Source: Octopus bimaculoides (lineage: Eukaryota). From it: a DNA stretch of 58,590 nt. The stretch's first letter is position 1. Each line of letters opens with the position of its first letter. Of this stretch, positions 6,901-55,449 are shown in pieces. Location of the stretch: contig NC_069009.1 of assembly GCF_001194135.2 (NCBI RefSeq), positions 1,358,396 through 1,416,985 on the forward strand, given 5' to 3'. Made by a program: the position numbers and the translations under genes. The notes under the pieces were generated by a model. The model saw nothing but the letters and a program-made list of their open reading frames with translations, was not told the DNA's origin and did not search any database.

Positions 6901-7360
6901 GTATGTGTATGAGTCCACCAAGTTTGACCCTCTCCGTGACCTTCATTACCTGATCCAACAACTTCATACCTCTGTAATTATTTGGATCTAAAGCGTCACT
7001 TTTACCTTTGTAGCAGTTGACTATGGTGCTGCTACATCAGTCATTGGGTATGACTCCTTCATGTATCACCTGGTTAACTACACGGGTGACTAGGCTATAG
7101 CCGACACCGCCAGATATTTTGAGCATCTCTGCGATGATTTCTGATGGGCCCGGGGCTTTCCCTGTCTTCATACTCTCAATTGCTTTATCTACCAAGGTAC
7201 TGTCAATTCGGATAGCTGGTCCCTCTAATGGGTCGACATTCGGCAGACTCTCTTTCTCCCATTCATTCTCTTTATTGAGCAACCTTTCATAGTGGCGTCT
7301 CCAAACCTCTCTCTTCGCTGCCTCGTCTAGTGCAAGTGAACCATCATCCATGCGGACACA
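6901..7360 (-). mobile_element. RTE-like non-LTR retrotransposon (LINE) ORF fragment: linker and start of reverse transcriptase
   Basis: REVWRRHYERLLN...MKTGKAPGPSEIIAEMLK...IPND*CSSTIVNCYKGKSDALDPNNYRG matches the GKAPG and YKGKGD..NYRGI pre-RT motifs; contains stops. Confidence 0.85.
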
Positions 7361-7746
7361 TTTTGATTTCAAATTTTGGCACAACACCTGCAGTTTCAGG
7401 GAAGAGGCTAAGTCAGTTGCCTCAACCCCAGTGCTCATCTGGTAGTTATTTTACCGACCCCTAAAGGATAAAAAGCAAATTCGACCCTAGTAGAATTCGA
7501 ACTCAGAACGTAAAGACAGATGAAATACTGCTAAGCATTTTGCTCAGCGTGCTAATAATTCTGCCAGCTCGCAGCCTTAGTGTAGTGTAAATAATGCTTT
7601 ACTAATCAGTGAAGAAGTTTCTGGTTATTACTAAGACTGAATAATTAAACTAACTTAACTAAGGTGCAGACATGGCTTCTCAACCACATGGTTCCAGGTT
7701 CAGTCCCACTGCTTGGCACCTTGGACAAGTGTCTTCTACTATATAC

Positions 7747-8077: not shown

Positions 8078-8469
8078 NNNNNNNNNNNNNNNNNNNNNNN
8101 NNNNNNNNNNNNNNNNNNNNNNNNNNNNNNNNNNNNNNNNNNNNNNNNNNNNNNNNNNNNNNNNNNNNNNNNNNNNNNNNNNNNNNNNNNNNNNNNNNNN
8201 NNNNNNNNNNNNNNNNNNNNNNNNNNNNNNNNNNNNNNNNNNNNNNNNNNNNNNNNNNNNNNNNNNNNNNNNNNNNNNNNNNNNNNNNNNNNNNNNNNNN
8301 NNNNNNNNNNNNNNNNNNNNNNNNNNNNNNNNNNNNNNNNNNNNNNNNNNNNNNNNNNNNNNNNNNNNNNNNNNNNNNNNNNNNNNNNNNNNNNNNNNNN
8401 NNNNNNNNNNNNNNNNNNNNNNNNNNNNNNNNNNNNNNNNNNNNNNNNNNNNNNNNNNNNNNNNNNNNN
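8078..8469. other. Assembly gap (N run) flanked by (TA)n
   Basis: Direct. Confidence 1.
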
Positions 8470-10603: not shown

Positions 10604-10960
10604 ATCATCATCATCGTTTAACGTCCGCTTTCCATGCTAGCATGGGTTGGACGCTTTGACTGAGGACTGGCGAACCAGATGGCTACACCAGGCTCCAATC
10701 TGATTTGGCAGAGTTTCTACAGCTAGATGCCCTTCCTAATGCCAACCACTCAGAGAGTGTAGTAGGTGCTTTTACGTGCCACCAGCACGAAGGCCAGTCA
10801 GGCAGTACTGGCAACGGCCATGCTCAAAATGGTGTATTTTATGTGCCACCAGCACAAGAGCCATTCCGGGGGCACTGGCAACGATCTCGCTCGAAAGTCC
10901 TTACACATGCTGCGGGCACAAGTGCCAGAAAGAGGACGCTGGGCACAGGTGCCATCCCGA
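10604..10960 (-). mobile_element. Retroelement family B (RTE-like 3' end, (GAT)n tail)
   Basis: AGGAAGGGCATC core; CCATGCTAGCATGG; homologous to 14071-14285. Confidence 0.75.
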
Positions 10961-10964
10961 TTTC

Positions 10965-11266
10965 GAAGGCCGATCTCAAAATGCTAAGCCTTACAAAGGA
11001 GATGACAGGGAACCAAGATATGTGGTGTATTGCTGTATTTGCGAAGATCTCACCATAACAGAATTGTGATCCTAAAACCAAGGTACCATGTAAAAAGTAC
11101 CCAGTACACTCTGGAGTGGTTAACATTAGTTAGGAAGGGCATCCAGCTGCAGAAACCAACCAAAACAGACCATGGAACCTGGTGCAGCTCTAAGCTTTTA
11201 CATGTTCCTGTCAAGCCATCTAACCCATACCAGCATAAAAACAGACGTTAAAGAATGATGATGATG
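10965..11266 (+). mobile_element. Retroelement family C (older relative of B), free-standing copy
   Basis: Starts GAAGGCCGATCTCAAAAT, ends (GAT)n; homologous to 23903-24233. Confidence 0.7.
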
Positions 11267-14070: not shown

Positions 14071-14285
14071 TGCCGTTGCCAGTACCGCCTGACTGGCCTT
14101 CGTGCGGGTGACACGTAAAAGCACCCACTACACTCTCTGAGTGGTTGGCGATAGGAAGGGCATCCAGCTGTAGAAACTCTGCCAAATCAGATTGGAGCCT
14201 GGTGTTGCCATCCGGTTTCACCAGTCCTCAGTCAAATCGTCCAACCCATGCTAGCATGGAAACTGGACGTTAAACGATGATGATG
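14071..14285 (+). mobile_element. Retroelement family B, about 75 bp upstream of the ZF3 ATG
   Basis: As for the 10604 copy. Confidence 0.8.
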
Positions 14286-16504: not shown

Positions 16505-16871
16505 NNNNNNNNNNNNNNNNNNNNNNNNNNNNNNNNNNNNNNNNNNNNNNNNNNNNNNNNNNNNNNNNNNNNNNNNNNNNNNNNNNNNNNNNNNNNNNNN
16601 NNNNNNNNNNNNNNNNNNNNNNNNNNNNNNNNNNNNNNNNNNNNNNNNNNNNNNNNNNNNNNNNNNNNNNNNNNNNNNNNNNNNNNNNNNNNNNNNNNNN
16701 NNNNNNNNNNNNNNNNNNNNNNNNNNNNNNNNNNNNNNNNNNNNNNNNNNNNNNNNNNNNNNNNNNNNNNNNNNNNNNNNNNNNNNNNNNNNNNNNNNNN
16801 NNNNNNNNNNNNNNNNNNNNNNNNNNNNNNNNNNNNNNNNNNNNNNNNNNNNNNNNNNNNNNNNNNNNNNN
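16505..16871. other. Assembly gap (N run)
   Basis: Direct. Confidence 1.
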
Positions 16872-23449: not shown

Positions 23450-23815
23450 CACCTGGAACAAAGTAAAGAAAGTTTCCATCCACTAAATCCCTTCACAAGA
23501 CTTTGGTCAGTCTGATGCTATAGTAGAAGACACTTGCCCAAGGTACTACACATCAGGATTGAACCTAAAACCATGTGGTTAGGACTGAACCCAGAACCAT
23601 GCCTATGCTTAGATGTTCTACATAAAAAAATCAATGGAGAATAATTAAAGAGTAAAACAACTTTATTCCTCTTTCAAGTTATTAAAAATATTCACAAAAT
23701 GTGATGAGGTCAGAATTCAAAAACCTCAGTCTTGCAGCTGAAATGACTAAAGATTGAAATAATGTTTTTAGACAGACAGGTTTGACTCTCAATACAAGAT
23801 GGAGTTTTCACACAA

Positions 23816-23890
23816 CTAGTGATATTTTACTGTATAGATGCTTATATGCCTTGTTAAGTGATTTCTTTGGGAGAATGATTTACCTCAGAT
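23816..23890 (-). pseudogene. Distal half-finger behind ZF5 (I*GKSFSQRNHLTRHISIYT)
   Basis: Manual translation of the reverse complement. Confidence 0.8.
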
Positions 23891-23902
23891 AGATGAAGTA
23901 TT

Positions 23903-24233
23903 GAAGGCTGATCTCAAAATCCTGATCCTTACAAAGGAGATGACAGACAACTGAGAAATGTGGTGTATTGCTGTACTGAAGACCTGCCTACCACAACAGA
24001 ACTGAGATTCTGAAACCAAGGTGTCATATAAAAAGCACTGGTGATGGGGCCCATTATAAGCACCCACTCCACTCTGTGGGGTAGTGTGGCATTAGGAAAG
24101 ATATCCAATTGTAGAAACCAATCCAAAACAGACTATGGAACTGGGGTGGCCCCTAGCCTTGATAGTTCCTGCGAAGCCATACAACCCATGCCAGCATGGA
24201 AAACGGGCGTTAAATGTTGATGATGAAGATTAC
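23903..24233 (+). mobile_element. Retroelement family C inserted within a finger at the ZF5 3' end
   Basis: Flanked by two halves of one finger. Confidence 0.75.
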
Positions 24234-24237
24234 GATG

Positions 24238-25575
24238 TCACAGTGATGTTTTCTCTCTTGTATGAATGAGCTTGTGTCTAGTGAAAGTACCATTCATAGC
24301 AAATGATTTACCACAGATATCACAGTGATATGGTTTCTCACCCGTATGAATACGTTTGTGAGTAGTTAAGTTACCTTTCTGAGCAAACGACTTACCACAG
24401 ATATCACAGTGAAATGGTCTCTCACCTGTATGAATACGTTTGTGTGCAGTTAAGTAATCTTTTTGAGAGAATGATTTACCACAGATATCACAGTGATATG
24501 GTTCCTCACCTGTATGAATGTATTTGTGCTTAATTAAGTCACTGCTTCCACTGTATGACTTACCACAGATATCACAGTGATATGGCTTCTCTCCTGTGTG
24601 AGTGCGTTTGTGCTGAGTTAAGTTACAACTTATACTGAATGACTTTCCACAGATATCACAGTGATATGGCTTCTCCCCTGTATGAACACGTTTGTGTTTT
24701 GCCAAACAACTTCTTCCAGAGAATGATTTACCACAGATATCACAACGATAGGGTTTCTCTCCTGTATGAGTGTCCCTGTGCTGAATTAAATTACTATTCT
24801 GAGAAAATGATTTACCACAGATATCACACTGATATGGTTTCTCACCTGTATGAATACGTTTGTGAGTAGTTAAGTCACTACTTCCAGAGAATGATTTACC
24901 ACAGATATCACAATGGTATGGCTCCTCTCCTGTATGAAGACGTTTATGATGAACTAAACTATTTGTTTGAGAGAATGTTTTACCACAAATGTTACAGTGA
25001 TACGGTTTTTCTCCTGTATGAATGCGCTTGTGAGTAATCAATGTCCAATTAGCAGTGAACGATTTACCACAGATATCACAGTGATAGGGTTTCTCCCCTG
25101 TATGAATGCGTTTATGGGCAGTTAAGTTGTGACTCTCAGAGAATGATTTACCACAGACAGCACAGTGATATGGTGTTTCTCCTGTGTGAATGCGTCTATG
25201 AGTTTTTAAGGTACTGTTTACTGCAAATGACTTACCACAGATATCACAGTGATATGGTTTCTCACCGGTATGAAAGTATTTATGTTTGTTGAAGTTACCC
25301 TTTGTAGCGAATGACTTATCACATATGTCACAGCAGTATGGTTTCTCTCCTGTATGAATACGTTTGTGTTTAATTAAGAGGTTATTTTGAGAGAATGATT
25401 TACCACAGACATCACAGCGATATGGTTTCTCTCCAGTAGAAATGCATTTATGAGTAGTTAGGTTACAGCCTTGAGAAAAAGTCTTTTTGCAGATATCACA
25501 ACAGTATAATTTCTCTCTTTCTTTCGTTATTTCTTCATGAAATAAGCCATCCTTTACATTTTTCACATAACTCAT
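24238..25575 (-). CDS. ZF5: tandem C2H2 zinc-finger protein, 445 aa, 14 intact fingers plus degenerate first finger, ends TSL*
   Basis: ORF 24238..25602; ATG at 25575 matches the paralog start (MSYV). Confidence 0.93.
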
Positions 25576-25617
25576 TGTTCTATAATGTTCTGATACCACC
25601 ACAACAAATAAATACTT

Positions 25618-27382: not shown

Positions 27383-28127
27383 NNNNNNNNNNNNNNNNNN
27401 NNNNNNNNNNNNNNNNNNNNNNNNNNNNNNNNNNNNNNNNNNNNNNNNNNNNNNNNNNNNNNNNNNNNNNNNNNNNNNNNNNNNNNNNNNNNNNNNNNNN
27501 NNNNNNNNNNNNNNNNNNNNNNNNNNNNNNNNNNNNNNNNNNNNNNNNNNNNNNNNNNNNNNNNNNNNNNNNNNNNNNNNNNNNNNNNNNNNNNNNNNNN
27601 NNNNNNNNNNNNNNNNNNNNNNNNNNNNNNNNNNNNNNNNNNNNNNNNNNNNNNNNNNNNNNNNNNNNNNNNNNNNNNNNNNNNNNNNNNNNNNNNNNNN
27701 NNNNNNNNNNNNNNNNNNNNNNNNNNNNNNNNNNNNNNNNNNNNNNNNNNNNNNNNNNNNNNNNNNNNNNNNNNNNNNNNNNNNNNNNNNNNNNNNNNNN
27801 NNNNNNNNNNNNNNNNNNNNNNNNNNNNNNNNNNNNNNNNNNNNNNNNNNNNNNNNNNNNNNNNNNNNNNNNNNNNNNNNNNNNNNNNNNNNNNNNNNNN
27901 NNNNNNNNNNNNNNNNNNNNNNNNNNNNNNNNNNNNNNNNNNNNNNNNNNNNNNNNNNNNNNNNNNNNNNNNNNNNNNNNNNNNNNNNNNNNNNNNNNNN
28001 NNNNNNNNNNNNNNNNNNNNNNNNNNNNNNNNNNNNNNNNNNNNNNNNNNNNNNNNNNNNNNNNNNNNNNNNNNNNNNNNNNNNNNNNNNNNNNNNNNNN
28101 NNNNNNNNNNNNNNNNNNNNNNNNNNN
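27383..28127. other. Assembly gap (N run) next to (TA)n
   Basis: Direct. Confidence 1.
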
Positions 28128-29629
28128 ATATACCATAATTCAGTTTAATTGATTATAGAGGTCACATAAAATGATGATTAATTTGTAAACTATGGTGAAT
28201 GTAGTATGTTATATCTCTAAGGTCCCTTTCGTTTTGTATAGGAAGTCGTTGTGTACGCACATATTTGTTATTCCACTTGCAGATTGTGTCTGTTAAAAGT
28301 TGTGTATCGTTTTATCATAGCGATTATTACTAACCATATGTTTGTCGGCTATTTGTGTTGCAAAAGAGTATTACAGTCGTAGATATGTTCCATTTTTAGC
28401 ACCTGGATCTGGTCACCTTAAAGGGATCTATATGAATGAAGCAATCCAGGTACTTATTTTTAAACCAGGTGTTGCTTGTTTGAACGAAACCTACAAGCCA
28501 ATAGTTCAGCATTGGCAAAGTTTTATTACAGAATTAAGTAATACATACATACATATCTCAGATCTAGTATATTTCAGTCACAAACTCTGCAATTTTTAAA
28601 AGGAAGTAAAAAAAATCTGAAAATTGGTTATCTTGATGTAGTTTTCCACGTTTATTTCTGTGAAACCATGAACTTGTGGAGAAAAAAATTTGGCATAAAA
28701 GTTATAGACGTTTAAAAGTTGTAAAAACTGTATTTTTAGGCAATAACAAAACAAATTTTCTGCTTTATAGCAGTGTTAACTTTAAGGTTATACCCTGTGA
28801 AATTTATTGTTTAGCGTCTGAGGATTCTAAATAAAGTCAACATGTATCATCTTACCATTTCTTTCGTCTTTTCATTGATTTCTATAGTGTTTTGTATATT
28901 TTTATTATTATTTTTAAATTTGTTATATTAATATATTTGTCTTTATGTGTTTGTTCCACATTGGTTTTTAAAGCTGAACTTTATGAAGCCATTGATCTGT
29001 TCCCCAGCAGTTCAAAGATGCATCTATAATGCACTTGTACAAAAACAAAGGGAAAAAGAGTGTACGTGATAATCCCCTTTTCCAATAGAAGAATAAGGAT
29101 AATCAAAAAGAATGGAGAAATGTGTTGATATTGGCAAGCTATTCTAGTGTAATTGTAAGCCACAGACACATTAATAACGGTTTCCATAGTAATAATCAGA
29201 CATGAAAACTCTGTGAGAACCACATGTTGACAAATACGTTGAAACCAATTTCAAGGATAGATTGGTGCTAATTTACTTCTTGTCCTTTTGAAATTTCAAA
29301 TTCAAAATCAAATAACACTTAATTAGCCAAAATGAATTGAATGACCCAACCACCTCTCACTCTGAGTTTAGAACATAGAATTTAGCTTTTTGCCACTTTG
29401 ACATTTATCTATCAACTTTCTAGTGAATTTTGGTTTGTAGTTTTCATATTTTGAAATATAATCTTACTTTTCCAAGGTGCACCTAATTACATCATAATTA
29501 GTGAGGTGATACAAATGAGAAAAATGTAAAAATTTAATTTATTTAATAAAAAAAGATACAATTGCTGTACTTTATTCACCAGGACATCTATTTTATCACT
29601 GATGTTGTTATTGATCAATATCAATGAAT

Positions 29630-29765
29630 ATATGTTTAGTTAAGGAACATTATTGAGACAATGATTTAGCACAGATAACAGTCATATAAATCTTAACCTT
29701 TATGAATATGATGTGGTTCAGTTAAGTGATTTCTACAAGAAAATGGTTTATCAAATGTCACGGTT
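29630..29765 (-). pseudogene. Two eroded fingers downstream of the ZF6 stop
   Basis: KPFSCRNHLTEPHHIH (end of ORF 29693..29896) and an ICAKSLSQ-like remnant. Confidence 0.7.
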
Positions 29766-31484
29766 TTATGGTCTTTCTTCTGTATGAGTCTGTTTGTGTT
29801 TGGCCAAATAACTTCTTGCAGAGAATGATTTACAACATATATCACACGGAAATGGTTTCTCTCTTGTATGAGTGCGTTTATGCACAGCAAAGTCACGTTT
29901 TACAGAGAATTGTTTACCACAGATATTACAGTGATATGGTTTCTCCCCTGTATGAATGTATTTGTGTCTAGTTAAGTTATCTGCACGAGAAAATGATTTA
30001 CCACAGATATCACACTGACATGAATTCTCTCCAGTGTGAATGTTTTTATGAGAAGTAAGGCGACAGTTTTGTGAGAACGATTTACCACATATATCACAGC
30101 AATATGGTTTCTCACATGTGTGAACATATTTGTGAGAGGTTAAATTACTTTTAGTCATGAATGATTTACCACAAACATCACAAGTATATGCTTTCTCTCC
30201 TGTGTGAATGTGTTGGTGAGAGATAAGCCTGGTCTTCTGAGAGAAGGTTTTTCCACAGACATCACAGTGATATGGTTTCCCTCCTGTGTGAATGTATTTA
30301 TGAGAGATTAAAGTGCCTCTATGAGAGAACGATTTACCACAGATATCACAGTGATATGGTTTCTCACCTGTATGAATGTATTTGTGAGAAGTGAGAATAC
30401 TTTTTCGTGAGAATGATGTACCACAGATATCACAGAAATATGGCCTCTCATGAGAAAGTTTGTGAGTAGTTAAATGACTTCCTAATGAAAATGATTTACC
30501 ACAAATATCACAAGGATATGGTTTCTCTCCTGTATGAGTGGACTTGTGAGAAGTAAGGCTATTCTTCTGACAGAATGATTTTCCACAAACATCACAGTGA
30601 TATGGTTTATCTTCTGTGTGAATATATTTATGATAGGTCAAAGTGCCTGTGGAAGAAAATGATTTACCACAGATATCACAGTGATATGGTTTCTCTCCTG
30701 TATGAATGTATTTGTGTCTTGTTAATGTTTCCTTTATAGCAAATGATTTACCACATATGTCACAGGGATATGGTTTCTCCCCTGTATGAATGTATTTATG
30801 TCGAGTTAAGGTATGTAATTTAGAGAATGATTTACCACAAATATCACAGCGATGTGGTTTCTCTCCTGTATGAACGAATTTGTGAGAAGTAAGGCCAGTC
30901 TTCTGACAGAAGGACTTGCCACAAATATCACAGTGATATGGTTTTTCTGCTGTGTGAATGTATTGGTGTGAAGTAAGGTTAATCTTCTGAGAGAATGACT
31001 TACCACAGATATCACAGTGATATGGTTTCTCTCCTGTGTGGATGTATTTGTGCGAAGTAAGGTTAGTCTTCTGAGAGAATAACTTTCCACATATGTCACA
31101 GTGATAAGGTTTATTTCCTGTATGAATGTATTTGTGATAAGTAAGGCTACATTTCTGAGAGAATGATTTATCACAGATATCACAGTGATACGGTTTCTCT
31201 TCTGTGTGAATGTATTTATGAGAGGTTAAAGTGCCTCGAGAAGAAAATGATTTACCACAGGTATCACAAGAATATGGTTTCTCTCCAGTATGAATGTATT
31301 TGTGAGAAGTAAGTCTTTGTTTTTGAGAGAACGATTTACCACAGATATCACAATGATATTGCTTCTCACCTGAAGGAATACATTCGCGAACAGTGAGATT
31401 TCCCTCATTAGAGAAAGACTTTTCACAGACATCACATTGGTATGATAGTTTTTCTCTTTCTTTTGTCATCTCCTGAGGATTCAT
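29766..31484 (-). CDS. ZF6: tandem C2H2 zinc-finger protein, 572 aa, 19 intact fingers plus degenerate first finger
   Basis: ORF 29766..31508; first ATG at 31484. Confidence 0.93.
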
Positions 31485-37568: not shown

Positions 37569-37788
37569 ACGTCGTCGTCGTTTAACGTCCGCTTTCCATG
37601 CTAGCATGGGTTGGACGATTTGACTGAGGACTGGTGAAACCAGATGGCTACACCAGGCTCCAATCTGATCTGGCAGTGTTTCTACAGCTGGATGCCCTTC
37701 CTAACGCCAACCACTCAGAGAGTGTAGTGGGTGCTTATACGTGTCACCCGCATGAAGGCCAGTCAGGCGGTACTGGCAACGGCCACGC
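37569..37788 (-). mobile_element. Retroelement family B
   Basis: As for the 10604 copy. Confidence 0.8.
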
Positions 37789-38388: not shown

Positions 38389-39101
38389 TAGCTTCAAAAT
38401 GAAGTTTTATTGTAGATCAGTTTGGGAAAATGTATCACTTTTATCATATATTGATCAAGTGTGTGAATTCTATAGTTTATGGTAGTGTCACCAGCACAAG
38501 ATTTGGTTGGATACCTGCATATAAAATGATAGAAGAATAATCAAAGGTTAAAACAACTTTATTTCTCTTTTAATTTATTAAATTTATTCATGAAATTTGA
38601 TGAGATCCAATTTCAGGAATTTAGAGAAATGTAAGGATGCTATATCATCCATTGCATGGGTTACACAAGATACATATTTGGACCATAGGTAGTGGGGGGG
38701 CATTTGGCTTTTGTCATCACTTCCAGAATTAAGCTGGAGGCTTATTCCTGGAGGTGTGGGGCAGTAGCATGAAGGCTGCAGCTGCTGGGATTCCTAGGCT
38801 TGTCCATCCAGCAGAAAACTGACCAGGAATGGAAACTGGGAAGTCATAATGACATATCCACAAGAAAACAAAACAAATTAAGTTCATCAAAACTATTTGA
38901 ATGAAAAACACACATAATTATTGAGTAGGGCAAATGAGAAACGTGGTAAATATTTCATTTGTTCAATACAATGTAATACAGTTGCTGTACTTTATACAGC
39001 AGGACACTTATGTTATCAAATAATATTATCAATCAATATGAATAAATATATGTTCAGTTACGGTACATTATTGAGAGAATGATTTTGCACATATATGAAA
39101 C

Positions 39102-41944: not shown

Positions 41945-42377
41945 TCTTTTACTTGTTTCAGTCATTTGACTGCAGTCATGCTGGAGCACCGCCTNNNNNN
42001 NNNNNNNNNNNNNNNNNNNNNNNNNNNNNNNNNNNNNNNNNNNNNNNNNNNNNNNNNNNNNNNNNNNNNNNNNNNNNNNNNNNNNNNNNNNNNNNNNNNN
42101 NNNNNNNNNNNNNNNNNNNNNNNNNNNNNNNNNNNNNNNNNNNNNNNNNNNNNNNNNNNNNNNNNNNNNNNNNNNNNNNNNNNNNNNNNNNNNNNNNNNN
42201 NNNNNNNNNNNNNNNNNNNNNNNNNNNNNNNNNNNNNNNNNNNNNNNNNNNNNNNNNNNNNNNNNNNNNNNNNNNNNNNNNNNNNNNNNNNNNNNNNNNN
42301 NNNNNNNNNNNNNNNNNNNNNNNNNNNNNNNNNNNNNNNNNNNNNNNNNNNNNNNNNNNNNNNNNNNNNNNNNNNNN

Positions 42378-44343: not shown

Positions 44344-44489
44344 CATCATCATCATCATTGTTTAACGTCCGCTTTCCATGCTAGCATGAGTTGGACGATT
44401 TGACTGAGGACTGGTGAACCAGGTGGCTACACCAGGCTCCAATTTGATTTGGCAGAGTTTCTACAGCTGGATGCTTTTCCTAATGCCAA
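44344..44489 (-). mobile_element. Retroelement family B 3' portion between the ZF8 acceptor and ATG
   Basis: As for the 10604 copy. Confidence 0.8.
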
Positions 44490-46938: not shown

Positions 46939-47233
46939 TACAATGGGTTTCTTTCAGTTTNNNNNNNNNNNNNNNNNNNNNNNNNNNNNNNNNNNNNNNN
47001 NNNNNNNNNNNNNNNNNNNNNNNNNNNNNNNNNNNNNNNNNNNNNNNNNNNNNNNNNNNNNNNNNNNNNNNNNNNNNNNNNNNNNNNNNNNNNNNNNNNN
47101 NNNNNNNNNNNNNNNNNNNNNNNNNNNNNNNNNNNNNNNNNNNNNNNNNNNNNNNNNNNNNNNNNNNNNNNNNNNNNNNNNNNNNNNNNNNNNNNNNNNN
47201 NNNNNNNNNNNNNNNNNNNNNNNNNNNNNNNNN

Positions 47234-48550: not shown

Positions 48551-49057
48551 GATAAATAAAATGGTTGATGAGCAAGGGCCATGATCTTCTTGCTATGATC
48601 CTATCTGCAAGGTGGCCTGTGGCATAAGATAAAGCCAGTCAAGTTGCGTCCTCATAGCTTGCGTGTCAGTGTAGAAAGGAGAAAGTGATGAGGTTACATG
48701 TCTGAACCTTAATGTTGTGTATGCCCCCTATCTATGGCCGTCAATCTGATGTTATAATAGAAGACACTTACCCAAGGTACGACATGTTGGGACTGAAACC
48801 AGAACCGAGTGGTTGGGAAGCAAACTTCTTAACACACGGTCATGCATATGATTAAACATTTTGCATATAAAATCGATGGAGAATAATTAGTGAGTAAAAC
48901 AACTTTATTCCTCTTTCAAGTTATTAAAAATATTCACAAAATGTGATCATGTCAGAATTGAAAAATGTCAATCTCGCAGCTGAAATGACTAAAGATTGAG
49001 ATAATGTTTTTAGACAGACAGGTCCAACACACAATACAAAATGGAGATTTCACACAA

Positions 49058-49132
49058 CTAGTGATATTTTACTGTATGGATATTTATATGCCTGGTTAAG
49101 TGATTTCCTTGGGAGAATGATTTACCACAGAT
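49058..49132 (-). pseudogene. Distal half-finger behind ZF9 ([20 protein letters not shown])
   Basis: C-terminus of ORF 49058..49318 (-). Confidence 0.85.
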
Positions 49133-49142
49133 AGATGAAGTA

Positions 49143-49476
49143 TTGAAGGCTGATCTCAAAATCTTGAACCTTACAAAGGAGATGACAGACGACTGAGATA
49201 TGTGGTGCATTGCTGTACTGGAGAAGACCTGCCCACCACAATGGAATTGAGATCCTGATACCAAGGTGTTATGTAAAAAGCACTCGTGATGGGGCTGTGT
49301 CTGAATCACCCAGTACACTCTGTGCAGTGGTCGGCATTAGGAAAGTTATCCAGCCATAGAAACCAAGCCAAAAACAGACTATGGAACCTGGTGCAGCCCC
49401 TAGCCTCGTCAGTTCCTGCCAAGCCATACAACCCATTGAAAACAGGGGTTAAATGTTGATGATGAAAATGATAATG
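49143..49476 (+). mobile_element. Retroelement family C, ZF10-like copy
   Basis: Nearly identical to 54105-54369. Confidence 0.75.
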
Positions 49477-49523
49477 TCACAATGATGTTTCCTCTCCTTT
49501 ATGAATGAGTTTGTGTTTAGTTA
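49477..49523 (-). pseudogene. Isolated ZF10-like C-terminal fragment (TKHKLIHKGEETSL*)
   Basis: Near-identical to 54370-54415. Confidence 0.8.
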
Positions 49524-49681
49524 CTGGTGATGGGGCCATGTTAAAAGCACCCATTATAATCTGTGGAGTGGCTAGCATTAGGAAACACTACAGAGTCTGG
49601 TGTGACCCCTAGCCTTGTCCTGCTAAGGCATACAACCCATGCCTGCAATGGAAAACAGGTTAAATGTTGAAGATGATGATG
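49524..49681 (+). mobile_element. Retroelement family C, 5'-truncated, ZF5-like copy
   Basis: GGTGATGGGGCC...AAGCACCC...CAACCCATGCC shared with 24040-24233. Confidence 0.7.
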
Positions 49682-49858
49682 TCACAATGACGTTTGCTGT
49701 CCTACATGAATGAGCTCGTGTTTAGTCAAAGTACCATTCAGAGCGAATCACTTACCACAGATATCACAGTTATGTGGTTTCTCACTTGTATGAATATGTT
49801 TGCGAGTAGTTATCTTTTTCAGAGAATGATTTACCACAGGTATCACAGTGAATGGCTC
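49682..49858 (-). pseudogene. Decayed last two fingers of ZF9 beyond its current stop, ending ...LTKHELIHVGQQTSL*
   Basis: Reverse complement reads [12 protein letters not shown].. then CDICGK*FALNGTLTKHELIH; contains indels and a stop; homologous to the ZF5 and ZF10 C-termini. Confidence 0.85.
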
Positions 49859-51763
49859 CTATCCTGCATGAATGCATTTGTGCTTAGTCAAGAGACTACT
49901 TCTGAAGAATGATTTACCACAGATATCACAATGGTATTGTTCCTCTCCTGTATGAAGACGTTCATGATAATTTAAACTATTTATCTGAGAGAATGTTTTA
50001 CCACAAATATTACAGTGATATGGTTTTTCTCCTGTATGAATACGCTTGTGAGTAGTTAAGTGACTATTTTCAGAGAAAGACTTACCACAGTTATCACAAT
50101 GATATGGTTTCTCACCTGAGTGAATACGTTTGTGTTTAGCTAAATTACTTTTTCCAGAGAATGATTTACCACAGATATCACAATGGTATGGCTCCTCTCC
50201 TGTATGAATGCGTTGATGATGAATTAAACTATTCATCTGAATGAATGTTTTACCACAAATATTACAGAGATAGGGTTTTTCTCCTGTATGAATACGCTTG
50301 TGAGCTATCAGGGTACCACTAGCAGTGAATGATTTACGACAGATATCACACTGATATGGTTTCTCTCCTGTATGAATGCGTTTGTGAGTATTCAAGTGTA
50401 AACTCTTAGAGAATGATTTACCGCAGACAGCACAATGATATGGTGCTTCCCCCGTGTGATTGTATTTATGAGTTGTTAAGGAACTATTTACTGCAAATGA
50501 CTTACCACAGATATCACAGTGATATGGTCTCTCACCTGTATGAATACGCTTGTGAGAAGTTAAGTGGCATTTTTCAGAGAATGACTTATCACAGGTATCA
50601 CAGTGATATGGTTTCTCACCTGTGTGAATACGTATGTGTTTAGCTAAATCAGTTTTTCCAGGGAACGATTTACCACAGATATCGCAATGGTATGGTTCCT
50701 CCCCTGTATGAAGACGTTTATGATAAATTAAACTATTCCTATAAGAGAATGTTTTACCACAAATATCACAGTGATACGGTTTTTCTCCAGTATGAATGCT
50801 CTTGTGAGTAATCAAGGTACCACTAGCAGAGAACGATGCGCCACAGACATCACAGTGGTATGGTTTCTCACCTGTATGAGAGTATCTATGTGTAGTTAAG
50901 TTACTCTTTACAGCGAATGACTTACCACATATATCACAACTGTATGGTTTTTCTCCTGTGTGAATGCGTTTATGAGTTTTTAAAGTACTATTCACTGTAA
51001 ATGACTTACCACAGATATCACAGTGATGTGGCTTCTCACCTGTATGTATACGTCTGTGAGCTTTCAAGTTATCAGTTACAGAAAATGATTTACCACAGAT
51101 ATCACAGTCATATGGTTTCTCACCTGTATGAGAGTAATTATGTCTAATTAACTTACCCTTTACAGCGAATGACTCCCCACATATATCACAACAGTATGGT
51201 TTTTCACCTGTGTGAATGCGTTTATGATTTATTAAGACCCAAATTCCTGCAAATGACTTGCTACATATATCACAATGATGGAGTTTCTCTCCTGTGTGAA
51301 CACGTTCATGTTGAATCAAATTACTTTTCTGAGAGAATGTTTTACCACAAATATCACAGTGATAAGGCTTTTCTCCAGTATGAACACGCTTGTGAGCAAT
51401 CAAGGGACCATTAGTAGTGAACGATCTACCACAGATATCACATTGATATAGTTTCTCACCTGTATGAATACGTTTATGTGTAGTTAAATTTCCTTTTTGA
51501 GAGAATGATTTGCCACAGGTATCACACTGATATGGTTTCTCACCTGCATGAGAGTATTTATGTTTAGTTAGGTTACCCTTTACAGCGAATGACTCGCCAC
51601 AGATATCACAGCGATATGGTTTCTCTCGAGTAGAAATGCATTGATGAGTAGTTAGGTTACCTCTCTGAGAGAAAGACGTTTTGCAGATATCACATTGATA
51701 TAATTTTTCTTTTTCTTTTGTCATCTCTTCAGGAAAAAAGCCATCCTTTCTCACATAACTCAT
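49859..51763 (-). CDS. ZF9: tandem C2H2 zinc-finger protein, 634 aa, 21 intact fingers plus degenerate first finger
   Basis: ORF track translation. Confidence 0.94.
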
Positions 51764-53641: not shown

Positions 53642-54097
53642 TTAATACGGTGTAGGACTGCCTTTGGCAGTAATTACAACTTGAATTCTATGAGCTATTG
53701 ATTTTTACAAAGATTAAATTGTTTCCAAAGGAATTTTTGTCCATACTTCAGCTAAAACAGTCTCCAGTTCTGGTAGTGATGATGTTGGAGGATATTGACT
53801 CCTTACTTGTTTTTCTAAAATGCACCATAAATGTTCAATAATACTGAGATCTGGGTGGTGTGGTGGCCAGATATGATGTTCAACTTCACTAGAGTGTTCT
53901 TCGTGTCATTCAGCAACAACTTTAGCTGTGTGAATTGGTGCATTAGCATCCTGAAGGATGATTGTCTTTCCCTCTGGAAAGATTTCCGCAACCATAAGAT
54001 GAATCTGATCAGATAAAATGCTTAAATAGTCTTGACTATTAACTCTGCCATGAAGGGAAACCATTGGGCCGGCAGATTTCCAAGATATAGTCCCCAC
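53642..54097 (-). mobile_element. Tc1/mariner transposase C-terminal fragment (pseudogenised)
   Basis: ILQDANAPIH...WPPHHPDLSIIEHLW...VITAKGSPTPY*, resembling the Tc1 QDNAPxH and WPxxSPDLNPIE motifs. Confidence 0.85.
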
Positions 54098-54104
54098 CCC
54101 AGAT

Positions 54105-54369
54105 CATCTGTACTGGAGAATACCTGCCCACCACAACGAATTGAGGTCCTGATACCAAGGTGTTATGTAAAAAGCACTCGTGATGGGGCTGTGTCTGAAT
54201 CACCCAGTACACTCTGTACAGTGGTTGGCATTAGGAAAGTTATCCAGGCATAGAAACCAAGCCAAAACAGACTATGGAACCTGGTGCATCCCCTAACCTC
54301 GTCAGTTCCTGCCAAGCCATACAACCCATTGAAAACAGACGTTAAATGTTGATGATGAAAATGATAATG
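54105..54369 (+). mobile_element. Retroelement family C at the ZF10 3' end, 5' part missing next to the Tc1 fragment
   Basis: Homology to 49210-49476. Confidence 0.75.
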
Positions 54370-55449
54370 TCACAATGAGGTTTCCTCTCCATTATGAATG
54401 AGTTTGTGTTTAGTCAAAGTGCCATTCACAGCAAACGATTTACCACAAATATCACAGTGATATGGTTTCTCACCTGTATGTATGTATTTGTGCTTAGTTA
54501 AGAGACTACTTCTAGAGAACGATTTACCACAGACATCACAGTGATATGGCTTCTCTCCCGTGTGAATGTGTTTGTGCATAGTCAAGATACTACTTCTAGA
54601 GAATGACTCGCCACATATATCACAGCAATATGGCTTCTCTCCTGTGTGAATACGTTTGTGATTTACCAAATTATTTCTGCTAGACAATGATTTACCACAT
54701 ATATCACAATGATGGAGTTTATCTCCTGTGTGAAGATATTTATGATGGATTAAATTACTTGTCTGAGAGAATTTTTTACCACATATATCACAGTGATACG
54801 GTTTTTCTCCAGTATGAATGCGCCTGTGAGCAATCAAGAGACCATTAGTAGTGAACGATTTACCACAGATCTCACAGTGATATGGCTTATCACCTGTATG
54901 AATACGTGTGTGTGTAGTTAAACTACATTTCTGAGAGAATGACTTACCACAGATATCACAGTGATATGGTTTCTCGCCTGTGTGAGAGTATCTATGTGTG
55001 ATTAAGCTACTCCTTACAGTGAATGACTTATCACATATATCACAGCAGTATGGTTTTTCTCCTGTGTGGATGCGTTTATGAGCTATTAAGACACTAATTA
55101 CTGCAAATGATTTCCCACAGATATCACAGTGATGTGGTTTCTCACCTGTATGAATGTGTTTGTGAGTAGTTAAGATACTTTTTTGAGAGAATGACTTACC
55201 ACAGATATCACAGTGATATGGTTTCTCACCTGTATGAGAGTAATTATGTCTAATTAAATTACTCTTTACTGTAAATGACTCGCCACATATATCACAGCGA
55301 TATGGTTTCTCTCGAGTAGAAATGCATTTATGAGTAGTTATGTTATCTCTCTGAGAGAAAGACGTTTTGCAGATATCACAATGATATAATTTTTCTCTTT
55401 CTTTTGTCATCTCTTCAGGAAATAAGCCATCCTTTCTCACATAACTCAT
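54370..55449 (-). CDS. ZF10: tandem C2H2 zinc-finger protein, 359 aa, 11 intact fingers plus degenerate first finger, ends TSL*
   Basis: ORF track translation. Confidence 0.94.
   Translation of the reverse strand: MSYVRKDGLFPEEMTKEREKLYHCDICKTSFSQRDNITTHKCISTREKPYRCDICGESFTVKSNLIRHNYSHTGEKPYHCDICGKSFSQKSILTTHKHIHTGEKPHHCDICGKSFAVISVLIAHKRIHTGEKPYCCDICDKSFTVRSSLITHRYSHTGEKPYHCDICGKSFSQKCSLTTHTRIHTGDKPYHCEICGKSFTTNGLLIAHRRIHTGEKPYHCDICGKKFSQTSNLIHHKYLHTGDKLHHCDICGKSLSSRNNLVNHKRIHTGEKPYCCDICGESFSRSSILTMHKHIHTGEKPYHCDVCGKSFSRSSLLTKHKYIHTGEKPYHCDICGKSFAVNGTLTKHKLIHNGEETSL

Follow-up and report, generated by a model that had tools for sequence, protein, structure and literature searches.

In Octopus bimaculoides, the former last finger of a C2H2 zinc-finger (ZNF) gene lies in two pieces on either side of a retroelement, and the same scar occurs at three genes of one cluster. 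It is very probable that the terminal finger of an ancestral gene was split by an antisense non-LTR retroposon of approximately 340 bp, that the linker in front of this finger suffered a 2-nt deletion, and that the resulting 3′ module then spread in the cluster.

The gene cluster and the genes carrying the scar

The window, i.e. the whole stretch of DNA analysed (58,590 nt), comes from O. bimaculoides GCA_001194135.2, CM046629.1, approximately 1,358,396-1,416,985, and was read together with adjoining loci, 74 kb altogether. Its sequence is AT-rich and contains ten canonical C2H2 finger arrays (approximately 150 fingers) of the Krüppel type, with C-x2-C-x12-H-x3-H units, TGEKP-like linkers and an 84-nt period. 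In the ORFs of the cluster, a short MSYV… lead precedes the first finger. A further family member, ZF11 (MSYVRN…), is located just past the window end; its 3′ end is of another kind, and the scar is absent from it. All sequences quoted in a preliminary description of this DNA were found where that description had placed them. The arrays and ORFs of the carriers are:

24262-25416, minus strand: finger array of ZF5
24238-25602, minus strand: ORF of ZF5, 15 fingers, likely start MSYVKN… at 25575
49706-51610, minus strand: finger array of ZF9
54394-55296, minus strand: finger array of ZF10
54370-55449, minus strand: ORF of ZF10, 359 aa, 12 fingers, ending …HKLIHNGEETSL*

Anatomy of the split finger in ZF5

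On the minus strand, ZF5 ends with CAT ACA AGA GAG AAA ACA TCA CTG TGA CAT C, its stop codon TGA being at 24240-24238. In the original frame of the split finger, these letters read TGT (24242-24240), GAC (24239-24237) and ATC (24236-24234). The Cys1 codon of this finger lies 82 nt, not 84, beyond that of the last intact finger (24324), and the loss of 2 nt from the linker is therefore real; the TGA of ZF5 is TGT GAC read out of frame after this deletion, as had been proposed. The linker has changed from CCATATCAC to ACATCAC, and comparison with the canonical GAG AAA CCA TAT CAC TGT suggests that one AT was lost from ATAT and that a C-to-A change followed. The stop in use thus stems from the deletion, 10 nt upstream of the element, and not from the element itself. 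The insert, 343 bp long (23891-24233), follows the Ile codon of the former last finger and precedes the codon of its second Cys. The parts of the scar are (scores in bits refer to the finger matrix described below):

24234-24261, minus strand: degenerate linker and proximal piece of the split finger in ZF5 (ACA AGA GAG AAA ACA TCA CTG TGA CAT C)
23891-24233, sense on plus strand, antisense to ZF5: element of family C in ZF5, 343 bp
23816-23890, minus strand: distal half finger of ZF5 with the original C-terminus and stop (I*GKSFSQRNHLTRHISIYTVKYH*), 40.8 bits
23506-23815, minus strand: original 3′UTR of ZF5, homologous to 48740-49057 in ZF9
49058-49132, minus strand: distal half finger of ZF9, starting ATC TGT GGT…, intact in frame, 54.2 bits
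Proximal junction: …AAACATCAYTGTGACATY, then tail
Distal junction: …CTTCATCT, then ATCTGTGGTAAATCATTCTCCCAA
Restored uninterrupted (empty) site: CAYTGTGACATCTGTGGTAAATCATTCTCCCAAGGAAATCAC

The distal half of ZF5 (23890-23816) reads ATC TGA GGT AAA TCA TTC TCC CAA … CAT ATA AGC ATC TAT ACA GTA AAA TAT CAC TAG and is mutated at two points, TGT to TGA and His to Tyr. With the distal half of ZF9, the split finger has both Cys and both His, no stop inside, and the original stop kept. Downstream of the ZF5 stop, AATAAA first occurs at 23667-23662, beyond the half finger, with its ZF9 counterpart at 48909; homology between the 3′ flanks of the two genes extends over approximately 390 nt. For these reasons the element and the half finger are likely part of the ZF5 3′UTR.

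Excision of the insert restores the finger

A weight matrix was built from 182 intact fingers of the region. It gave a background of -102 ± 19 bits over 148,426 positions, and real fingers scored 69.5 ± 9.5 bits with a minimum of 32.1. The half fingers, at 40.8 (ZF5) and 54.2 bits (ZF9), make up two of the three positions outside the arrays that reached at least 25 bits. When 24242-24234 was joined to 23887 and onwards, a 63-nt finger of 48.4 bits was obtained, within the range of real fingers; one retroelement has thus split the terminal finger between C-x2 and the second Cys, as the preliminary description had it. In a grid of 25 × 25 = 625 joins, with the cut points moved by up to 12 nt to either side, all joins together averaged -92.7 ± 32.9 bits and high scores were reached only by near-exact joins. 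Five of the 625 scored as well as the exact join: four are equivalents of one another inside the duplicated ATC, and the fifth is a base off.

Upon removal of the insert and one ATC, the finger is in register and is followed by the original stop (…HTVKYH*) and by the 3′UTR with AATAAA. In ZF9, the finger reads through in a single frame after excision and repair of the 2-nt deletion. Excision in silico, a check that had been proposed beforehand, therefore restores the finger register, contrary to the outcome that had been named as refuting the split, and a chance resemblance is excluded because the scores of the half fingers and of the exact join are far above the background and the grid.

The inserted element

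Elements related to the insert were located by BLAST and alignment, with at least eight family matches in the 74 kb. Besides the ZF5 copy, they include:

49133-49472, plus strand: family C element in block 9b of ZF9, full length, 83.7% identical to the ZF5 copy
54108-54365, plus strand: family C element in ZF10, 5′ (distal) part missing
10965-11264, plus strand: free family C copy with head, core and (GAT)n tail as in the ZNF copies
10605-10771, 14116-14285, 37581-37739 and 44345-44488: SINE-like (family S) copies with one common head

A 3′ module of approximately 200 nt is common to the family and ends with …CCATGC(T/C)AGCATGGAAA.CGGACGTTAAA followed by (GAT)3-6. Families S and C share these approximately 200 nt at 74-86% identity and differ in their heads, the copies in ZNF genes and the free copy having a distinct head of approximately 175 nt. 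No further head-bearing copy was found within the 74 kb. In each of the six copies aligned, the (GAT)3-6 tail directly meets the flank, and in the ZNF copies it adjoins …GTCACAGTG; in ZF5, the tail TGATGATGAAGAT(TAC) occupies approximately 24219-24233 next to the proximal half finger. The ZNF copies have their sense strand on the plus strand of the window; the element therefore runs antisense to the genes, with its tail next to the proximal half finger.

No terminal inverted repeats were found in the ZF5 element, unlike a MITE in ZF11 (see below), which has such repeats of 21 nt. The (GAT)n tail on the flank, the common 3′ module with differing 5′ parts and this lack of terminal inverted repeats lead us to infer a non-LTR retroposon, either SINE-like or the 3′ end of a 5′-truncated LINE. 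ARAGORN and Rfam searches over the window found no tRNA, 5S or 7SL head, so the element does not demonstrably qualify as a strict-sense SINE; inspection of the family C head by eye also showed no A or B box. One frame of this head, present in all three copies, reads KADLKxLxLTKEMTxN(TGA)xMW(TGT)IAV…stop, and we take it to resemble the C-terminus of LINE ORF2 proteins. If the head is indeed the end of a LINE ORF2, family C would be a 5′-truncated LINE and the other family its SINE partner. This reading obtained no Pfam match, and a phmmer search of the head against 1.84e9 representative proteins returned just one spurious repeat protein. The ORF2 reading being unsupported, the class of the element is judged from its architecture only. 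A LINE fragment at 7040-7450 was considered and set aside; it is broken off before its 3′ end, so that no link to the element could be made.

The free copy, whose 5′ end may reach approximately 10895, has no finger sequence at either end of 10965-11264, in agreement with the preliminary description. This bears on the idea that the half finger belongs to the consensus of the element, or resembles a finger by chance, which we regard as hardly credible. Such an idea can draw on the fact that one free head-bearing copy is the sole comparison; against it, the half finger is missing from the four SINE-like copies as well as from the free copy, the half fingers score 41-54 bits against the background of -102 ± 19, and a ZNF-type end and a 3′UTR with AATAAA, common to ZF5 and ZF9, follow the half finger.

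Junctions and target site

The four proximal junctions read, on the gene strand, 1) GAC ATC GTA ATC TTC ATC ATC AAC ATT TAA in ZF5, 2) GAC ATT ATC ATT TTC ATC ATC AAC… in ZF10 and in ZF9 block 9b, and 3) GAC ATC ATC ATC TTC AAC… in ZF9 block 9a. Their alignment suggests an ancestral junction of approximately (ATC)3 TTC (ATC)2, the complement of the (GAT)n tail of the element. At the distal junction, approximately 8-10 nt (AGATGAAGTA, plus strand) are outside the similarity to the free copy, and the GATGAAG within them reappears in the element tail. ATC is present at both junctions, as had been noted; nothing beyond it (at most 4 nt) is duplicated, and it is identical to the tail unit. As a target-site duplication this is less telling: the proximal ATC is indistinguishable from the last (ATC)n tail unit, the duplication is therefore 0-4 nt, and this hallmark of retroposition is weakly documented at the site.

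The ancestral gene would have been an Octopus C2H2 ZNF gene with the split finger as its terminal finger, followed by a short 3′UTR with AATAAA. A non-LTR retroposon of approximately 340 bp with a (GAT)n tail would then have entered this finger, antisense to the gene, most likely by target-primed reverse transcription (TPRT): the gene strand would have been nicked after …CAC TGT GAC ATC, and the ATC end at the nick could pair with GAU repeats of the element RNA. Such an insertion would have parted the C-x2 portion (HCDI) from the remainder of the finger (CGKSF…H-x3-H). The linker before this finger would have lost 2 nt by slippage in the same ancestral copy (CCATATCAC to CCATCAC, followed by the C-to-A change), and the frame would thereby have shifted, with TGT GAC read as …CTG TGA to give the …TSL* end.

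Order of the two lesions

The deletion and the insertion are each enough to remove the last finger, and both occur in all four copies. Were the deletion absent, the frame would enter the element tail and read …HCDI-IIFIINI*, with a stop eight codons on; were the element absent, the deletion by itself would give …TSL*. Because each lesion suffices and all copies have both, their order is unreadable, and the "TE-driven truncation" of the preliminary description is not borne out, the stop in use being that of the deletion. The half finger of ZF9 is undecayed, which suggests that the split finger was alive or only just dead when hit.

Elsewhere in the cluster, a TAT-to-TAA change in a linker terminates both ZF6 and ZF11, relic fingers remaining beyond it; ZF7, too, retains a relic finger downstream of its stop. 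A MITE of approximately 280 bp lies in the first dead finger of ZF11; its terminal inverted repeats measure 21 nt, TCTAAAC is duplicated, and removing the MITE restores the finger sequence. It is thus the common pattern of this cluster that small mutations cost a gene its terminal fingers and that transposons afterwards settle in the dead sequence. The relic fingers of ZF6 and ZF7 were also tried as a clue to an earlier death of the split finger and were set aside, their similarity to it being no closer than that of the median finger.

Two orders can be weighed. The order we slightly favour, with a nearly even chance of being right, puts linker slippage first: the protein would have stopped at …TSL*, what had been the last finger would have become 3′UTR, and the element would have landed there harmlessly. 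The stop in use derives from the deletion; the same route recurs in the cluster, through the TAT-to-TAA changes and relics of ZF11 and ZF6 and the relic finger of ZF7; and the dead finger of ZF11 later received a MITE. As ZF6, ZF7 and ZF11 lost fingers by small mutations and ZF11 was then hit by a MITE, this order is at least as likely as the reverse. The lack of pre-insertion decay in the ZF9 half finger tells against it to the extent that the interval would have been short. The converse is only slightly less probable: the protein would have been truncated by the retroelement landing in a terminal finger that was still functional, and the 2-nt deletion would have arisen later as a neutral change in a useless tail. 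It agrees with the otherwise intact split finger in ZF9, which must have been functional or recently dead when hit, and with the tail giving, on the gene strand, a stop 8 codons in. Against it, both lesions are present in all four copies; fixed insertions are expected more often in dispensable sequence, and the stop in use is not supplied by the element.

Common origin and mosaic history of the scar

The proximal junction of the scar is found four times, once in ZF5, once in ZF10 and twice in ZF9. The blocks of ZF9 and the sequence adjoining the ZF10 element are:

49513-49768, minus strand: ZF9 block 9a, with its own decayed last finger (CDICGK*FALNGTLTKHELIHVGQQTSL*) and approximately 165 nt of the element with deletions
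49473-49512, minus strand: proximal junction of ZF9 block 9b, …TKHKLIHKGEETSL* then CAT T, non-coding
53650-54107, minus strand: relic of a Tc1/mariner transposase, 5′-truncated (DDE_3, E = 1e-10)

All four copies have the same insertion point, orientation, 2-nt deletion and C-to-A change, which argues for a single ancestral event behind them and upholds the single-origin scar of ZF5, ZF9 and ZF10 claimed earlier. Independent insertions in three genes are ruled out by the identical junctions, deletion and C-to-A change.

The carriers differ in what they have retained. A TSL* terminus had been ascribed to all three genes; proteins with this end are encoded by ZF5 and ZF10 only. The ORF of ZF9 stops at 49859 (HAG*), two fingers early and upstream of both TSL relics, which are therefore non-coding. 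Past this stop, one finger is frameshifted and another is interrupted by a stop, and two copies of the junction follow. Block 9b, whose join to 9a at approximately 49512 is non-homologous, opens partway through a last finger and includes the complete element, the half finger and the 3′UTR. Both junctions are present in ZF5 and ZF9. In ZF10, only the proximal junction was found, no distal half finger being detected anywhere downstream, and the element ends at 54108 directly against the Tc1/mariner relic.

Jukes-Cantor distances were 0.046 between 9b and ZF10 and about equal, 0.20-0.29, among ZF5, 9a and the pair 9b and ZF10. ZF5 and ZF9b diverge by 18% in the proximal part and by 8% in the distal part, and this unevenness points to a reticulate history that a simple duplication model would leave unexplained. 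Fingers 3, 4 and 9 of ZF10 are 99-100% identical to fingers of ZF11. The genes are recombination mosaics. As the paralogues recombine, to judge from the ZF10/ZF11 identity and the composite 3′ end of ZF9, the scar marks the 3′ module only. Since the middle fingers of ZF10 match the scar-less ZF11 and the ZF9 end is composite, duplication may not have been the only route by which this module spread; unequal crossing-over or conversion between existing genes may have contributed. The preliminary description had placed the insertion before duplication and had offered it as a marker of the history of the cluster; both go too far, as the scar holds as a marker of the 3′ module only and this second route may have spread it.

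We propose that the 3′ module, i.e. the last intact finger, the deleted linker, the element, the half finger and the old 3′UTR, was propagated by duplication and/or unequal crossing-over. Later, ZF9 would have gained its upstream premature stop and composite 3′ end, and ZF10 would have lost its distal part; the element of ZF10 now borders on the Tc1/mariner relic. As for ZF5, its element and half finger would today be plain 3′UTR sequence.

With recombination so rife (the composite ZF9 3′ end, the ZF10/ZF11 identity, the uneven divergence), one may ask whether two ZNF genes were instead joined through a copy of the retroelement at a breakpoint, the halves never having been one finger. We hold this to be highly improbable: the halves complete one finger to the nucleotide and have ATC in common, what separates them is a complete element, head and tail included, and restoration of phase and position by chance is rare, as the five of 625 joins scoring as well indicate.

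The -T-S-L ends of ZF5 and ZF10 match the class I PDZ-binding C-terminus (S/T-x-hydrophobic-COOH), as a motif match only. Among the four copies, the TSL codons differ by synonymous changes only, and the four preceding codons diverge freely. That the scar is not inert, with -TSL serving as a class I PDZ ligand or the antisense 3′UTR element kept for a new interaction or shared post-transcriptional control, would be very surprising, and the scar is probably without function.

Searches for relatives

In a search with the full ZF5 protein, vertebrate ZNFs swamped the result and no close octopus relative was seen. The N-terminal 59 aa of ZF5 gave no candidates in protein databases, exact look-up of the ZF5, ZF9 and ZF10 proteins in a protein collection returned no entry, and the restored C-terminus retrieved short generic octopus ZNF fragments from protein databases, none with NHLTRHINIHTVKYH or a TSL end. 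Thus, no uninterrupted sister gene, orthologue or other TSL-ending relative was found in the protein databases. Within the 74 kb, the finger nearest to the restored one has only 79% identity, so there is no sister gene nearby.

Comparison with known systems and significance

Insertions of Alu/L1 type in exons truncate genes. The present case is likewise a non-LTR retroposon in a coding exon, with a tail that would supply an early stop; unlike those insertions, the stop in use is not that of the element, and the event was tolerated, fixed and then duplicated. In mammalian KRAB-ZNF clusters, Looman et al. are said to have described in 2002 the loss of fingers and decayed terminal fingers through frameshift or nonsense mutations. 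Shortening of arrays from the 3′ end by small linker mutations, with relic fingers in the 3′UTR, is similarly seen here (ZF6, ZF7, ZF11 and the 2-nt deletion), except that one relic finger has been physically split by a retroelement.

Tandem clusters of C2H2 ZNF genes are expanded in octopus, with SINEs enriched nearby (PMC12988792, PMC9795677, PMC10547256), and a transposon burst approximately 25 Mya is reported to have accompanied this tandem expansion (Albertin et al. 2015, as related in PMC12988792). The locus described here belongs to the same organism, gene family and architecture: its fingers are near-canonical (CDICGKSFS…HTGEKPY), and SINE-like elements abound in the surroundings of the genes. 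Those papers deal with genome-wide association and timing, whereas here a single element inside a finger has been dissected, which has no bearing on whether transposons drove the octopus ZNF expansion. Shared SINE/LINE insertions are standard markers of common descent (PMC9223172). As in retroposon systematics, one insertion at an exact site has been inherited by several loci and marks their common origin; in contrast to that practice, which uses orthologues across species, the loci are tandem paralogues of one genome and the marker is limited to the 3′ module.

The locus is a clean instance of known processes and reveals no new mechanism. The last finger, the 2-nt deletion and the element together form a local marker of 3′ ends with a common origin, which exposes the mosaicism of ZF9 and ZF10. 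It provides a nucleotide-resolved example of terminal-finger loss in octopus ZNF arrays and of transposon scars travelling with duplicated or converted segments.

Junction copies and insert ends

The codons for T-S-L, the C-terminal residues of ZF5 and ZF10 that arose with the 2-nt linker deletion, were compared among the four copies of the element-split finger, which lie in the C2H2 zinc-finger genes ZF5, ZF9 (3′ blocks 9a and 9b) and ZF10.

Window 24241-24249, 49480-49488, 49685-49693 and 54373-54381: T-S-L codons of the four copies

All changes were synonymous (Thr, ACA/ACA/ACG/ACC; Ser, TCA in 4/4; Leu, CTG in one and TTG in three); the four codons ahead of T-S-L had many non-synonymous differences among the copies. 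Taken together, these sites are too few for statistics. Comparison of ZF5 with 9b (window 23506-24330 vs 48740-49530) revealed that 41 of 227 positions (18%) differed in the proximal part, containing the last-finger end and proximal element, and 21 of 250 (8%) in the distal part, containing the distal element, half finger and 3′UTR. Such unevenness is suggestive of heterogeneous rates or a conversion tract.

A 7-nt direct repeat, GATGAAG, was located just within each end of the ZF5 insert, an antisense retroelement (window 23892-23898 and 24222-24228), its ZF9 counterparts being GATGAAG and GATGAAA. GATGAAG at the 5′ junction may be tail-derived filler.

Repeats and gaps surrounding the genes

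Window 10605-10771 (minus), 14116-14285 (plus), 37581-37739 (minus) and 44345-44488 (minus): SINE-like family copies, head GCCGTTGCCAGTACCGCCTGACTGGCC…
Window 23543 (minus), 38045 (plus), 42506 (minus), 47356 (minus), 47961 (minus) and 48483 (minus): copies of another short repeat
Window 7040-7450, minus: LINE ORF2 fragment, …GKAPGPSEIIAEMLK…
Window 8078-8469, 16505-16871, 27383-28127, 41995-42377 and 46961-47233: N runs (assembly gaps)

The SINE-like family had a ~200-nt 3′ module and (GAT)n tail in common with the element of the zinc-finger genes, and the two may form a SINE/LINE partner pair. Copies of the short repeat carried CCTTGGGCAAGTG and GGTTCA(A/G)TCC-like boxes, and we take them to resemble CORE-SINEs such as octopus OR1, a candidate likeness with the name drawn from the literature. 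The LINE ORF2 fragment spanned the region upstream of the reverse-transcriptase domain and extended into the domain, breaking off after ~200 codons. These N runs were located in intergenic regions of the cluster.

Decay of terminal fingers

Window 49473-49860: pseudogenised ZF9 3′ end
Window 53650-54107, minus: 5′-truncated relic of a Tc1/mariner transposase (DDE_3 in Pfam; E = 1e-10)
Window 54730-55212: ZF10 stretch compared with fingers 18-24 of ZF11, a family member on locus L001, just beyond the window end
L001 3440-3860, minus (approximately window 61590-62010, beyond the window): second finger split by a transposable element, in ZF11
Window 29600-29790, minus: ZF6 end and relic fingers
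Window 39038-39100, minus: ZF7 relic finger

The ZF9 3′ end contained a premature TAG at 49859, one frameshifted finger and another with an internal stop; it has two junctions because the older block 9a was joined non-homologously to the ZF10-like 9b. Behind ZF10, which now lacks the distal half finger and old 3′UTR, the truncated retroelement directly contacted the transposase relic. Fingers 3, 4 and 9 of ZF10 were 99-100% identical in DNA to fingers 18, 19 and 24 of ZF11, which indicates that these neighbours, with their unlike 3′ ends, very recently underwent gene conversion or a duplication. The ZF11 ORF terminated as HTGEKS*, via TAT-to-TAA within the linker, and the dead finger after this stop was broken up by a MITE-like element of ~280 bp, whose terminal inverted repeats (CAGGGGTTTTCAAACT…) are 21 nt long and which is flanked on each side by a duplicated TCTAAAC; upon excision of the element, a finger sequence of 21 protein letters was regained. 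The ZF6 stop was a TAA at the Tyr codon of the linker, followed by two relic fingers, and directly past the ZF7 stop codon was a relic finger containing an internal stop. Terminal-finger decay is common in this zinc-finger cluster.
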